Positions 32,003 through 44,000 of a DNA stretch of 64,000 nt are shown here, one piece after another; within the stretch, counting starts at the first letter, position 1, and each line of letters begins with the position of its first letter. Below the pieces are notes generated by a model. That model searched no databases. It saw only the letters and a program-made list of their open reading frames with translations, and was not told where the DNA came from. Location: contig OZ004614.1 in assembly GCA_963924565.1 (NCBI GenBank), forward strand, positions 8,122,001 to 8,186,000, given 5' to 3'. The position numbers and the translations under genes are program-made. This DNA comes from Ascidiella aspersa (taxonomy: Eukaryota).

Positions 32003-35000
32003 TCAACAAGGGTCATTTTTGTCGGTATGATTGCAGCTGGACGAGTTTTTCTCGCTTTTTAATCGTGACGTCTCCGACCTGATGACATCAGCAAGTCGAC
32101 GGAGTCCCTGCGAATAACAAACACAAAAAACGGTTCGTAGCGATATTTTGACGAACGATTCAAACTGTTTTAATTTCTCGTTTAACGTAACACATTAAGC
32201 AGTTTAAGTAAACTTGGAAAAAAATGTTTTGCCAGGTGGTCGAAGTCTTAAAGCCGCCGTCACCATTCTGTCTCGAATAATGCGTTTCAAATGGTATGAT
32301 TCTTTATTTTTTATGGATTTTATGTAATGGTAAACTTTTTTTTATTTTATGTGATGAAGAACTTAATTAACCTAAACAAATACTTTGTGATCATTTTATA
32401 TCGACTTTGGATAACCCTATTATATATCAGCATATAGCCTATAATAGGTTTCTGTTTTGCCTGGATTTCCTTGTACGATATAATAATGAATTGAAAATAA
32501 ACACTGTAAAACCGGCGGAAGTAATCGAGTAGTTTACCCCGACAGTCTAAATCAGTAGTCACCGAATTTTTTTCATAAACGGCCGGATCACTCAAAGACC
32601 TGGACATTGCGGGGCAGACAACAGTAAGGCTGGACGAACGAGGGCCAGATAGGCCTATACAATTTTGTGTCAATTGTACAGTGTTACAATGAAACATGAA
32701 CACACATGTGTGTTTACAACTGAAATCTAGCCCTTCTGAAGGATATGTAAGCCGTAATCGTTGGTCAAAAAGCAGCTTCAGAAGGGCTAGATTTCAGTTG
32801 TAAACACACATGTGTGTTCATGTTTCATTGCATATGATATGGTACTGTGAATCCCCTTCAATTGAAGTTGCTTGTACTAACACATTGAGCAAGCATTGGC
32901 GTATGGTTGTTTCTCGACTCGTTCCCTTCTGAGCCTGCATAGCTCAGTTGGTAGAGCGACGGTCCCGGCTTGACCGGAGGTTCGTGAGTTCGAACCTCAC
33001 TGCAGGCTAGTTGTTTTTCTAGTCTGCCCTGCTTGCATCATTGATCGACAGATTCGGTTAGAGTCTGCAATGGCTTTCGGTTGTACAGTGTTAACTTGAT
33101 TATCGTTAAACGAATGAAATATAAAATATTATGCAACAAGAACTGTAGTTAGCCGTAATAAATTGTCGATCAAGTCAACAAAGTTCTCGCAAATTTAGTT
33201 TAGGATTGTATCCTACAATATTTCAACTGTACCTTATCTTAATAAAGGAAATATGCTGCAGGCGGGTAGAATTACTTCAGGGGCAGGATATGGCTCACGG
33301 GCCCTAGTTTGGTGACCCCTGTTTTTATGCACCGTTCTTTTTTTCGTCTTTATTTTTCTAAAGTATTGTATTCTTTTTTTTAACTAAAAGAAAGTAAGAG
33401 TAAAGTAAAGGGTAAGAGGGTAGTGGCTCCTTCTTCCCATTGGCCAAAAAGGAGGCCGGGAATGCCTGAAGTGCCAGTAATGGTTCAAGCCCAGTCCTCA
33501 GGACAACCATTCCGAAAATGAGATGGTGTCGCCGCTTGGAGGTAGGGCCCGAGTTAAACTGCGCATCGGTAGAAGCTCAACATTTTCGCCTTTTTGGTTA
33601 TAGTGTAGGTAATATTGTAAGTGTCAGTATAAGTAATAATTTTAGTATTTTACTGGCCAGAAAACCCCGGTGTTACCCAGGAAAAAATGCCAGGACACAA
33701 ACCTCACAGTGATCCGGTTAAAGACCCCCCGTCAGGAGGTAATTAAAAGGTTTATTACTCATGGGCGTCGAAGTAAAGTTGTACACAACAACGAAAAGCA
33801 CCCAAAGTTAAATAGGGCGCAGAATGCAATCATCAATCATCATTTCAACGTAAACTCATAATTACTGCGCCTTAGGGACGCTAGTGAAATACCAACGCGA
33901 GCAACGTGTGCATAAGGCGTGCATGCAGCAAGGCAGTAGACTCATATAGTGCAATGGTTCCCAAACTCACATAGTGCAGTGGTTCCCAAGTGAGTGCATG
34001 TTAAGTGGGCCATAGAGATATTCGAAAATATTGCAACTATACATTTTGTAATACTAAAATAGTTCTTCGTATATGTAAAATATCTTGTGAAAACTCTGCG
34101 TGCGAGTTGTTTAACTTTGACACCCTGGAAACTTGGAATAAAAATCCTTATAATATTGGAAAACTTTTGTTAATCAATATGCAATAGTCATTACCAGAGG
34201 TGAAAAAAACGATGGGCCACGATCTGTTTTGTAAAAAAGCATTGGGCCACTGAATAAAAAGTTTGGGAACCACTGATATGGTGTGACAACAAAACACAGG
34301 AGATGAAATTAGTGCAATGGTCGAACTCCATGGCACTAAGAGCATTGATCTAACCTCGTCAAAAGTTTCCTCTTCTCCGATGGAGAATGTCAACCTGAAG
34401 CTTTTGCTCGATTCGCCGTAAAGTGAGAAGACTCGTCCCGGGATGACGAGTACACCCTTCTCGAAGGTTCGCGGCGTGAAGAGAAAAGAGGAGTCGTCGA
34501 GATCTTTCAGCGTGAACCAGACGAACAGACCGCTGTGGGGAGTTTGCCACGTTGCGAGATCTTGTAAGGTCGTAAAAGGTAAACCGCTATCAGATAACTG
34601 TTATGTTTGCCAGTGTCGTAGTGACTATAGTCTATAACGTTATACACTTAAGTCGCTGTTTTTAAATGACTTGACATGACCTAATATGCAAAAGTTCTGG
34701 ACAAGTGACTTGACTTGGACAGTGTTTCTATATTAAATTTTGGGTTAAATTAGCTGCTCGTAAAGTTTGCTGTCTATATTTAACTTAACGGGTACCAGTG
34801 TTGTTATGACTTAAATCAATGACTTGACTTAAGTGCACTTTAGTCACTGTTTTTTAATGACTTGAAGGGACTTAAGTCATTTGGACAAATGACTTAGGTT
34901 AAAATAAATTGTTTTAATTAAGCAATTATTTATAAAATTGCGTTATTTATCCCAATCTTTGCACATAAAACAATTTGCTTGCAATATGTTGCTTTTGTGT

Positions 35001-41000: not shown

Positions 41001-44000
41001 AACAAGAAGCACAAACGAACGTACCAGAGCGTTTCCGCCAGAATAGCAGGGCTTTTCCACCATCACTGCGTCAGCGGGTCCCAGCATGCTGCGAAAGATC
41101 AGGTCCATGCCCCCCTGGGCTCCGTTGGTGACCACGACCCCTACGTCACTCTTTTGGCGGGCGAAGGGCGGCTTGTGGTAGGTGAAGTGAAACTCCTCGA
41201 GCCAGTTTTTAAGGTCTGGGAATCTGATGGAACATGGGATTATTTGCTTGTGACCGGCCAATGCGAACGTATAGTGGAGAGCGATACATAGCCGGTGTCG
41301 TGGTGTTCGACCATTGCCCTAATTTCGTACCACGTGTTTTTTTGTGTGTGTGTCTGTGTGTGTCTGTATGTCTCTGTGTGTGTCTGAGTGTGTCTGTGTG
41401 CGTATGTGTGTGTCTGAGTGTGTCTGCGTGTGTCTGAGTGTGTCTGANNNNNNNNNNNNNNNNNNNNNNNNNNNNNNNNNNNNNNNNNNNNNNNNNNNNN
41501 NNNNNNNNNNNNNNNNNNNNNNNNNNNNNNNNNNNNNNNNNNNNNNNNNNNNNNNNNNNNNNNNNNNNNNNNNNNNNNNNNNNNNNNNNNNNNNNNNNNN
41601 NNNNNNNTAGGAGTCCGTTGGTCTCGACGTTATATGATTTTTCTAGTTATAACTATACAAATTATTTATGGAAGGTAAACCGAAACAGGACGAGACGGAA
41701 CTATTTCATTGTGAACTTAAACAAAACAATAGACAGCAAATGAATGAAACATTTATCTGAATTTAACGTTTAGAATAGAATATGAAAGATACACACAAGC
41801 GCGTTTACAACAACTGTGATCTAGGCCATCAGAACCTGCTTTTTGGCCAACGATTACGACTTACAAATCATAGTAACTCGGAAGCCATTGCACAATAACC
41901 GAATCCAAATGATACAAGCAAGGCAGGTTTGAAAAACAACAAACAACGTTTTCTAGTCGGCTTGCTTGCATCATTGGTCGTCAGATTCGTTTAGTGTGCT
42001 ATGGCTTGCGGCCTTATTAGGTTTTTTGTGTTGTCAAGCGATGGAATACAAATTAGTTGTTTTTTTGGGTTGATGCAAAACTCAGCAAAAAGTTTCGAGC
42101 TGAACCCAATGCGATAGACCACTAGGCCTAAGTGGGTAATTCTGCCAGCTCGTCTACACCGTATATAGCTCTAATGTAGATATACAGTTAAAATCGCCGA
42201 AATATTACTTTTTTTTTGATAAACTGAACGACAATTTCAAACAGATAAATATAGCTATTTTTAATTTTGTAAACGATTTATGTACATTTTTAACCGATTT
42301 TGACTTGAAATAATTTTGACAAATTTGGACCTAACGTGTAAATTTCGACAACATTTTGACTTTAAAAAAAAATAATCGCCCTACTTATGAGCTATAAAAT
42401 CGCACTCACCCTTCAGCCCCGGGGTACTGGACGATTCTAGTCACAGTCTTAGCATCGGTAACAAGTTCCTTTCCGTCGACCATTTTAAAGGTCATTTCTT
42501 GAACGGGAAAAAGGCTGGGGTTGGGCATCCCTGTTCCGAGACTAATAATATCCTCATACTTCATTGCAGTTGTCACCGCTCGCCTAAAAACAACGAGTTC
42601 CGAAAAGCTTTTCGAGCTGGAATTTTGTTGACCCGGTTTTTGAACGTTAGGTTATCTTTTTTGTTTATTTTGACACCTGAGTAATTAGAATTTTCTTAGG
42701 AATAACTGAATCTGCCCGAAACCGAATGGTGAAAACAAACGATTCTGGTTGCACATCAATGATAAAGATTAAAAGTATGCAGAACTTATAGTAAACCGGA
42801 AATTAGTTTCACTAATAAAGACTTGAACCAAAAACATGCCTAGAACTGTTGGTTTGTTTTTATTAGCGTATATATCTTGTCTTATATTGTGTTATGAATT
42901 TAGATACTGACGATGCTTTTATGAGCGAAGTATATTTATCATATTATAACATCCACAACAAAGTTTTCGGTTTACCAAGTTATGTACTTAATTCAATCTT
43001 TATTTTTACACCTCAGTTTCCAACGTATGTATTTGCCGAAGTCATTTTTTCGACTCAAATATGTGGGAAATGAACTATTGGTTTTTATGAGTGGGCCATA
43101 CAACTATTGCGTTAACTGCATTTTGTTTTAATTTTTCTGGTACGTTAATATTATTTTATGCCAATACAATCTACGTGTAGACTTTAGACATAAAGTTGTT
43201 TCCGTATATAAAGCTGGGCAACGAAACAGTATCGTTAATGTCGTTTGGGACCCCGGTGCAAAGTCTACTATGTATACCGTAAATTTTTATTGTATAATAA
43301 AAGCTAGCTATTTTCTCGACAAAAAAACAATGTTTTTTGTGGTAATAATATTATTTTAGAAAATAAGTAACGCTATATGGTAACTGCAGAGTTTCTCGAA
43401 AACCGCGGTGGTCGTTGCACAATGCCACGATCGAAAAAGTATATACCGACTCAATGGTAAAGTAAAATTTACTGGATGGGGTCAAGGCTTCCATGTCACC
43501 ATGTAAGGCCAAATTTCAATTTCAATGCACATAGTAGCCTACACATTGAATATGCTTTTGCAAAACCTTGCTGCAAATATAATTGTAGACTATTAATACA
43601 CCCCAAGGAGTGTGTTGGACCTCAATCAAATATATATTCACTCTTGAAGTATGTGTGCAAGTGCGCTGCGGCGGTGAAAAGCATGTGTGTTGCACTTATC
43701 AAGATTTTATAATAACTATTTTGTCGAAACGGAAGATTTTACAAACACTGAACTGTGTTTAACTACAGGTATTAAGATTTAATTTCCATCAATACAAAAC
43801 TGTTTGGATACGGGTCTCTTATAGTAGGTTGAAACAAAACAATCCAGTTTTAAACGGATATTTTGCACAAAAATCATTTATACAAAATGTAAAATCCAGC
43901 AACGCGGGGACCCTTTCTTTTTGTAGCCTGCTGAACTGGTTCTGCCACAAAAAATATGTTTGGAAATGTTTGCAAGCAAAATACAAAATCTTAGCGCCCA

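Follow-up and report, generated by a model that had tools for sequence, protein, structure and literature searches.

A very young fold-back insertion in Ascidiella aspersa belongs to an abundant non-coding retroelement with a tRNA-like core and Penelope-like insertion anatomy

We analysed a 64,000-nucleotide stretch of the genome of Ascidiella aspersa (assembly GCA_963924565.1, contig OZ004614.1, positions 8,122,001 to 8,186,000 of the forward strand), hereafter the window, and focused on an insertion at window positions 32674-33093. The inserted copy is a very young member of an abundant non-coding retroelement with a tRNA-shaped core. We consider it likely that the stretch represents one recent insertion of a non-autonomous element, with a 351-nt unit in the order segment B, tRNA-like module, segment A, that spreads by the type of target-primed reverse transcription associated with Penelope-like elements (PLEs). 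Copies of the family end at one of two tail sites, designated S1 and S2. The features of the window copy, including its target-site duplication (TSD) and a run of five T residues (T5) resembling an RNA polymerase III (Pol III) terminator, are as follows.

32674-32686: left TSD copy, 13 bp, TTGTACAGTGTTA; the mode of TSD length across the family is also 13 bp.
32687-32741, minus strand: inverted arm, the reverse complement of unit 36-92 (segment B1); its outward end at 32687 is an S2 tail.
32742-33080, plus strand: forward unit, running from position 2 to position 344 of the 351-nt unit (B, tRNA-like, A) and ending in an S1 tail.
32776-32830, plus strand: partner of the inverted arm within the forward unit (unit 36-92).
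32835-32842, plus strand: internal copy of the motif TGATATGG, immediately downstream of the S2 tail site.
32933-33008, plus strand: tRNA-like module in which the A-box-like and B-box-like sequences are intact, the acceptor stem has 7 bp and the anticodon loop 9 nt.
33010-33080, plus strand: segment A, which stops in the S1 tail, 7 nt before the end of the full unit; a head-tail panhandle can form between its last ~14 nt and the unit's first ~14 nt.
33014-33018, plus strand: T5 run, located in a hairpin loop; the hairpin is conserved and overlaps the 3' strand of the acceptor.
33081-33093: right TSD copy, TTGTACAGTGTTA, matching the left copy at 13/13 positions.

The TSD pair encloses 394 bp. 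The two arms, at 32687-32741 and 32776-32830, are 55 nt each, 100% complementary and 34 nt apart. The forward part begins at the commonest 5' end of the family and, relative to the 351-nt unit of tandem arrays, the window copy is without unit positions 345-351 and position 1. The motif TGATATGG also opens the unit, directly after S1. A tRNA-like fold was called at 32932/3-33008/9 on the plus strand both by ARAGORN (Ala-GGC) and by the Rfam tRNA model (50 bits, E 1.5e-8). A single private base separates the window copy from its sub-subfamily, which fits the intact TSD and the identical arms.

A sequence-only reading of the window had described the retro-insertion of a tRNA-containing mobile unit with a 13-bp target duplication, a perfect 5' fold-back, a tRNA-like segment, the internal order inverted piece, B, tRNA, A, and a loss of ~7 nt between A and B; all of these were confirmed. 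The same reading took the copy to be circularly permuted from a native order tRNA-A-B. This was not supported: unit 2-344, the forward part, is a full-length monomer of the ordinary kind, and the head ends of insertions cluster at the start of B, only ~5 of them lying near the tRNA 5' end. Nor is the B-to-tRNA junction special, with 1,464 genomic occurrences. As about one-quarter of the 91 head-type ends map to unit 1-3, the start of B, the standard phase of the family is B-tRNA-A, and the window copy is a typical standard-phase member that is not permuted.

The family is large. The 394-bp query yielded 168 scored matches among 3,763 first-look candidates in its own 308-Mb genome, and a 23-nt pattern from the T-arm and acceptor stem had 3,960 genomic matches, versus 0 for a control. 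The A-to-B junction was found 1,747 times. Tandem arrays, which reach up to 12 units, define a unit length of 351 nt in subfamily sf1, to which the window copy belongs, and 348 nt in subfamily sf2. The latter is very young, at 0.6-0.9% from its own consensus, and an array of at least 12 sf2 units with an exact 348-bp period lies at G000 C1:37349876-37353721. In a run with the same species label, DNA-read depth reaches 8,000-14,000-fold on the unit versus 1-7-fold on its flanks, and contigs of a run with another species label (X2) carry the unit too. The unit contains no open reading frame (ORF), the longest stop-free stretch in a trimer being 45-86 amino acids. A scan of metagenomes with an anticodon-arm pattern gave no match, and three pattern searches for the S2 motif of another subfamily found none.

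To describe how copies are built, 63 independent composite insertions were reconstructed from 60 loci fetched for the two subfamilies, the window and a copy in a PLE locus; it should be noted that this sample was drawn by two biased queries, one taking the sequences that best matched the window copy and the other a single sf2 motif. Exact flanking TSDs of 10-15 bp were present in 36 of the 63 insertions, with a mode of 13 bp (18 insertions), whilst exact flanking repeats of at least 10 bp occurred in 0.3% of shuffled flank pairs. Insertions contain between 0.3 and 4 units and have variable 5' ends. TSD-flanked insertions of 1.3-4 units at variable phase bear out the earlier suggestion that the template was longer than one unit.

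Among 91 outward 3' (tail) ends, 41 lie at unit 339-351 (S1), 43 at unit 82-102 (S2) and seven elsewhere. The head ends, also 91 in number (35 outer ends and 56 at inner junctions), include 11 outer ends and about a dozen inner-junction ends at unit 1-3, the others being scattered. That heads gather at unit 1 with either type of tail is an argument for a linear RNA whose 5' end is defined. A head-to-head strand switch, such that both outer ends are tails, was observed in 28 of the 63 insertions (44%), and no tail-to-tail switch was seen. All 23 fold-backs that could be classified pair S1 with S2 (16 S2/S1, 7 S1/S2, none S1/S1 and none S2/S2), an outcome with a probability of about 1e-7 under random pairing of tails.

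S1 and S2 are AU-rich sites directly upstream of a repeated motif, TGATA[T/C]GG. The context is ...ACTAA followed by TGATATG at the unit boundary (S1), and ...GGATAA followed by TGATATGG at position 98 (S2); in sf2 the motif reads TGATACGG at both tail sites. Tails finish in ...GGTATACTAA or ...CATTGGATAA, with no A-rich, simple-repeat or LINE-derived (long interspersed element) tail. They often have 1-5 nt in common with the start of the TSD, a microhomology that would be predicted from annealing of the nicked target to the RNA. An apparent T/C covariation of the motif between S1 and S2 was dropped from consideration, as the third head variant, TGATACGT, had matching S2 motifs in 0 of 11 cases and the site is also a CpG. 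Separately, the 61 target sites of loci L001-L066 show a weak preference at the nick beside the tails (C at -1 in 37%, T at +1 in 58%, T at -6 in 61%) in an AT-rich setting.

The commonest simple full-length form consists of unit 1-351 followed by 1-9x, ~443 bp in total with a 92-nt terminal direct repeat (loci L011, L019, L021, L022, L028, L039 and L056). In three fold-backs other than the window copy (L031, L042 and L066), the S2 arm extends exactly to unit 1, the S1 priming site, as predicted by a model in which the two target strands are both used for copying. The units of one insertion are near-identical at birth: young insertions show 0-1 differences between units and have private variants in common. 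Such identity fits repeated copying of one sequence, whether from a circle, a homogeneous tandem transcript or by end-to-end template jumps.

The insertion anatomy of the family closely parallels that of the PLE resident in the same genome. Among the loci read, a search for GIY-YIG domains identified one canonical PLE family, encoding RVT_1 together with a GIY-YIG domain at the C terminus, with which the protein atlas agreed (copies in loci L063-L072, for example G000 C1:15310224-15313478). The search also returned two small bacterial assembly contigs, C35 (L061, G000 C35:36721-39927), with a 16S-23S rRNA operon, and C11 (L062, G000 C11:2088-5303), with UvrC and an ATP-synthase-type gene, which are contaminant or symbiont sequences. 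The PLE carries a minimal hammerhead with the helix III loop palindrome AAGCUU, ~100 nt from its 3' end, recognized by eye and by descriptor scan. Ten PLE copies were present in the loci, eight of them clear of locus ends; seven of these eight are tail-outward fold-backs, and all seven pair a long tail with a tail 36 nt shorter. Exact TSDs of 11-12 bp flank five of the seven.

Features published for PLEs include tandems that are partial, a 5'-truncated copy in inverted orientation and a tail confined to one end (PMC8557442; PMC8969392). The tRNA unit has all of these insertion traits, which are also seen in the PLE copies of this genome, and the fold-backs, the S1+S2 pairing and the long and short PLE tails put into numbers a resemblance to Penelope-like insertions that had been noted from the window sequence. 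Two tRNA-unit insertions, at L066:2129-2479 and L069:2990-3255, lie within 60-700 bp of PLE copies, which may reflect a common target preference or chance.

These observations can be assembled into a model for the window copy. The template would be the commonest RNA form, unit 1-351 with a second B1 (1 to ~97), that is, 1.26 units in the order B-tRNA-A-B'. One target strand would prime cDNA synthesis at the S2 end, copying 92 back to 36, and the opposite target strand would prime at the internal S1 site, copying 344 back to 2, the RNA 5' end. Head-to-head joining of the two cDNAs would then produce TSD, reverse complement of 92-36, 2-344, TSD, with 42 nt of RNA lost at the junction; the inverted repeat of 55 nt would be perfect because B1 is present twice in the template RNA. 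The reverse transcriptase and endonuclease would be supplied by some PLE. Transcription from unit position 1 may be driven by an upstream partial unit (tRNA and A), by analogy with the promoter-carrying upstream pseudo-long terminal repeat (pLTR) of Penelope (PMC8557442).

The tRNA-like module is internal, at unit 196-271, and deviates from a genuine tRNA gene in its 9-nt anticodon loop, in a mismatched first anticodon-stem pair and in being embedded in ~4,000 repeat units. Between the sf1 and sf2 consensus sequences, only one of its 76 positions differs, versus 26.5% in B1, 17% in B2 and 16% in A; divergence within subfamilies is flat across these regions, and the T5 run is conserved as well. 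We infer that strong selection preserves the module in source copies, where it is probably a promoter element that binds Pol III/TFIIIC or a handle on the RNA. An alignment fold of ten units predicts the head-tail panhandle (unit ~3-15 with ~333-347), a long B hairpin and a hairpin of the acceptor 3' strand with T5 in its loop. Three compensatory pairs, from two lineages only, are no more than suggestive of this predicted fold.

Several observations weigh against PLE-type insertion as set out above. No autonomous partner was found: the one canonical PLE family that was compared has no sequence in common with the tRNA unit, including at the 3' end, and its TSDs are ~1 bp shorter than those of the tRNA unit. 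Two fold-backs have the same junction coordinate in both arms (11/11 and 23/22), which a turn-around template switch would fit better than two independent primings. Many fold-backs have long overlapping arms, for which either an RNA of several units or two RNAs would be required. With Pol III boxes lying 200 nt downstream, a start at unit position 1 would not be set by them, and the T5 run that directly follows the tRNA would terminate Pol III transcription. Finally, RNA reads over the unit show neither strand bias nor pile-ups at starts or ends, and no discrete transcript was seen, in a library that would miss small circles.

We considered whether the template might instead have been a circular or rolling-circle RNA of the retrozyme type, in which the unit is cut by host tRNA enzymes or by an unrecognized self-cleaving motif at S1/S2 and then ligated, so that insertions are permuted readings of the circle. 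This we regard as unlikely, although a number of observations favour it. Multi-unit insertions of variable phase occur within single TSDs, the units within one insertion are near-identical, and sharp ends lie on either side of S1. The head-tail panhandle would keep the monomer ends together for ligation, and the plus strand folds well below shuffled sequences (z = -4.2). Animal retrozymes are circularized by RtcB (PMC7229834), which also counts for a circle. However, the minus strand folds equally well (z = -4.3), and heads cluster at position 1 whichever tail is present, a pattern not predicted for a circle, which has no 5' end. Moreover, a linear element of the commonest form, 1-351+1-92, is able to regenerate itself.

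The search for processing signals likewise gave little support to a circle. Rfam covariance models (cmscan, E<=1-5) detected only the tRNA, and no ribozyme, in unit arrays of both subfamilies. At E<=1 these models also missed the minimal, dimer-type hammerhead of the PLE in this genome (L063, L066), so a negative from Rfam for hammerheads is weak here. A descriptor was therefore applied that specifies [C/U]UGAN[G/A]A, then helix II, then GAAA, and this found the PLE minimal hammerhead used as a positive control. Dimers of both subfamilies gave no hammerhead candidate on either strand, in keeping with the sequence-only reading, which had seen no intact hammerhead core in the unit. The sequence CTGATGA of sf2 was rejected as a hammerhead core, having neither helix II nor GAAA. 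A bulge-helix-bulge site for the tRNA-splicing endonuclease, formed from two TGATAYGG motifs, was rejected by inspection, as the central AUAU self-pairing is lost in sf2; folds of the hepatitis delta virus or RNase P type beginning at S1/S2 were not supported, their partial pairings not being kept between subfamilies. That RNase P/Z processing creates the ends, as had also been proposed, does not agree with the positions of copy ends. Among the 63 insertions, the 5' border of the tRNA (~unit 195) carries no tails, and the excess of head ends near its 3' border (271) is at most marginal.

RNA reads gave no sign of a circle, in a type of library that would miss small circles. Over the unit, this stranded library gave equal signal from both strands and a flat RNA/DNA depth ratio of 0.025-0.031, and reads across the A-to-B junction were not enriched in RNA (0.021 versus 0.027 in DNA). 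This signal looks like passive read-through or DNA carry-over, and is uninformative for small Pol III or circular RNA. Elsewhere in the window, a dispersed repeat at 33366-33500 has a DNA depth of ~200, versus 1-7 on unique flanks; its RNA reads at 33407-33500 come from one strand only, which shows both the strandedness of the library and the directional transcription of this repeat.

A more speculative version of the circular life cycle, for which we hold out little expectation, is that the family is a ribozyme-free 'retrozyme' dependent on a PLE, in which S1 and S2 are sites of unrecognized RNA processing and the tRNA mimic replaces the hammerhead. Cleavage would then be due to a new self-cleaving motif around UAA/UGAUAYGG, or to a host nuclease that attacks the linker and apex, which are single-stranded. 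Ligation into a circle would be helped by the head-tail panhandle, which would present the monomer ends, and host tRNA enzymes (ligase, export, CCA-adding) would be brought in by the invariant tRNA-like module.

An ordinary tRNA-derived short interspersed element (SINE), moved by a LINE and given its 5' inversion by L1-type twin priming, is a quite improbable source. The tRNA-like Pol III module, the 10-15-bp TSDs, the 5' truncation and the microhomology between tail and target would all be expected of a SINE. However, the module does not lie at the 5' end, and heads cluster at unit 1-3, not at ~196. The tails are neither poly(A) nor simple repeats, and they are of two fixed kinds with obligatory S1+S2 pairing; inversions affect 44% of insertions, and multimers in head-to-tail order are frequent. 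Inversions, multimers and two paired tails are hallmarks of PLEs that are not described for LINE-driven SINEs.

A DNA-level origin, either as a foldback or miniature inverted-repeat (MITE)-type transposon or as a satellite reinserted via extrachromosomal circles, is very hard to sustain. It would account for the inverted repeats in many copies, the arrays of up to 12 units and the equal folding of both strands. Against it, terminal inverted repeats are absent from simple copies, variable 5' ends go with fixed 3' ends, TSDs range in length from 10 to 15 bp, tails show microhomology and every strand switch is head-to-head. Two adjacent independent insertions, or an assembly artefact, we discount almost entirely, although no single read or contig was shown across the whole 144-nt hairpin of the window copy or across its right junction. 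One 13-bp TSD brackets the whole structure, the arms are identical at 55/55 positions, the left junction is present in an independent contig, and the recurrence of this architecture within single TSDs at 28 independent loci, spread over many chromosomes, makes an artefact very unlikely. That contig, from run X1, spans 32300-32713 without a difference and covers the flank, the TSD and 27 nt of the inverted arm; it may derive from the same sample as the assembly.

The window contains a second, older copy of the element, which consists of two arms separated by an 8-nt gap.

41782-41940, minus strand: old copy, unit 272 to 351 and on from 1 to 90, with an S2 tail at 41782; 134/155 positions identical (~86%).
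41949-42011, plus strand: inverted partner arm, unit 277 to 343, with an S1 tail at 42011.

The sequence-only reading had used the copy at 41782-41940 as evidence of the native order. Segment A does run straight into B there, but the copy is itself a 5'-truncated fold-back of the same kind; the inverted A piece at 41949-42011 was absent from that reading. The head-to-head junction (unit 272/277) sits at the 3' border of the tRNA module, and is possibly a point at which reverse transcription stopped at the tRNA fold.

The integration of PLEs is mechanistically unexplained so far (Craig et al., PMC8557442), and the family described here, with its 351-nt unit, very young age and thousands of copies bearing all PLE hallmarks, may be useful for its study. 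Two rules are added by these data, that initiation occurs at two sites only and that fold-backs obligatorily contain one of each, and both constrain models of how the target strands are used. The family also suggests that a PLE-style non-autonomous element can dispense with the hammerhead yet keep a tRNA-like module under strong selection, which raises the question of whether the module acts as a promoter in an upstream partial unit, as an RNA handle or as a processing signal. In genome annotation, copies will be mistaken for tRNA genes, MITEs or SINEs.

Amongst known systems, schistosome Sm-alpha and Sj-alpha, which Ferbeyre and colleagues are said to have described in 1998 (a study cited in PMC4209133), are reportedly SINE-like repeats of ~330 nt with tRNA-type Pol III boxes, both tandem and dispersed. 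The unit resembles them in its similar length, its tRNA-type Pol III boxes and its tandem and dispersed occurrence. However, Sm-alpha is reported to have an active hammerhead and the unit has none, carrying instead a complete cloverleaf in mid-unit followed by the T5 run. The tRNA-related module with A and B boxes, the thousands of copies and the TSDs recall tRNA-derived SINEs, from which the family differs in that the module is not 5'-terminal, there is no LINE-type or A-rich tail, and insertions are multimeric and inverted. L1 twin priming, attributed to Ostertag and Kazazian in 2001, reportedly leaves, within one TSD, a 5' segment that is inverted and a 3' segment in direct orientation, with a small deletion at the junction. 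The window copy likewise shows a small junction loss, here of 42 nt between unit 344 and the next 36; unlike twin priming, the family uses a fixed internal priming site (S1 or S2), has inversions in 44% of insertions and includes some turn-around-like junctions.

The animal non-LTR (non-long-terminal-repeat) retrozymes (Cervera & de la Pena 2020, PMC7229834; Li et al. 2026 preprint, 10.64898/2026.07.22.740005) are, like the unit, non-coding, 170-400 nt in length, and both dispersed and tandem, with TSDs of >4 bp, structured RNA and a proposed dependence on PLEs. The unit differs in having a tRNA-like module in place of their defining type I hammerhead. PLEs and their non-autonomous derivatives (MRC1/Chlamys of Chlamydomonas; Craig et al. 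2021, PMC8557442) have in common with the unit frequent 5' truncation, the lack of poly(A), partial head-to-tail tandems (a pLTR-like terminal repeat), a tail extension at one end, and an inverted 5'-truncated copy that yields flanking inverted repeats. PLE clades and non-autonomous derivatives without a hammerhead are known, namely Naiad and MRC1 (PMC8557442). Unlike PLEs, the unit is without an ORF, no similarity could be detected between it and the 3' end of the PLE family that was compared, it carries a conserved tRNA-like module of Pol III type, and its 'extension', the second B1, is ~92-97 nt long versus 30-40 nt in PLEs. The present analysis adds the two-tail rule with its S1+S2 pairing, the parallel with the PLE of the same genome, the selection on the tRNA-like module, and the recognition of the window copy as a member in standard phase.

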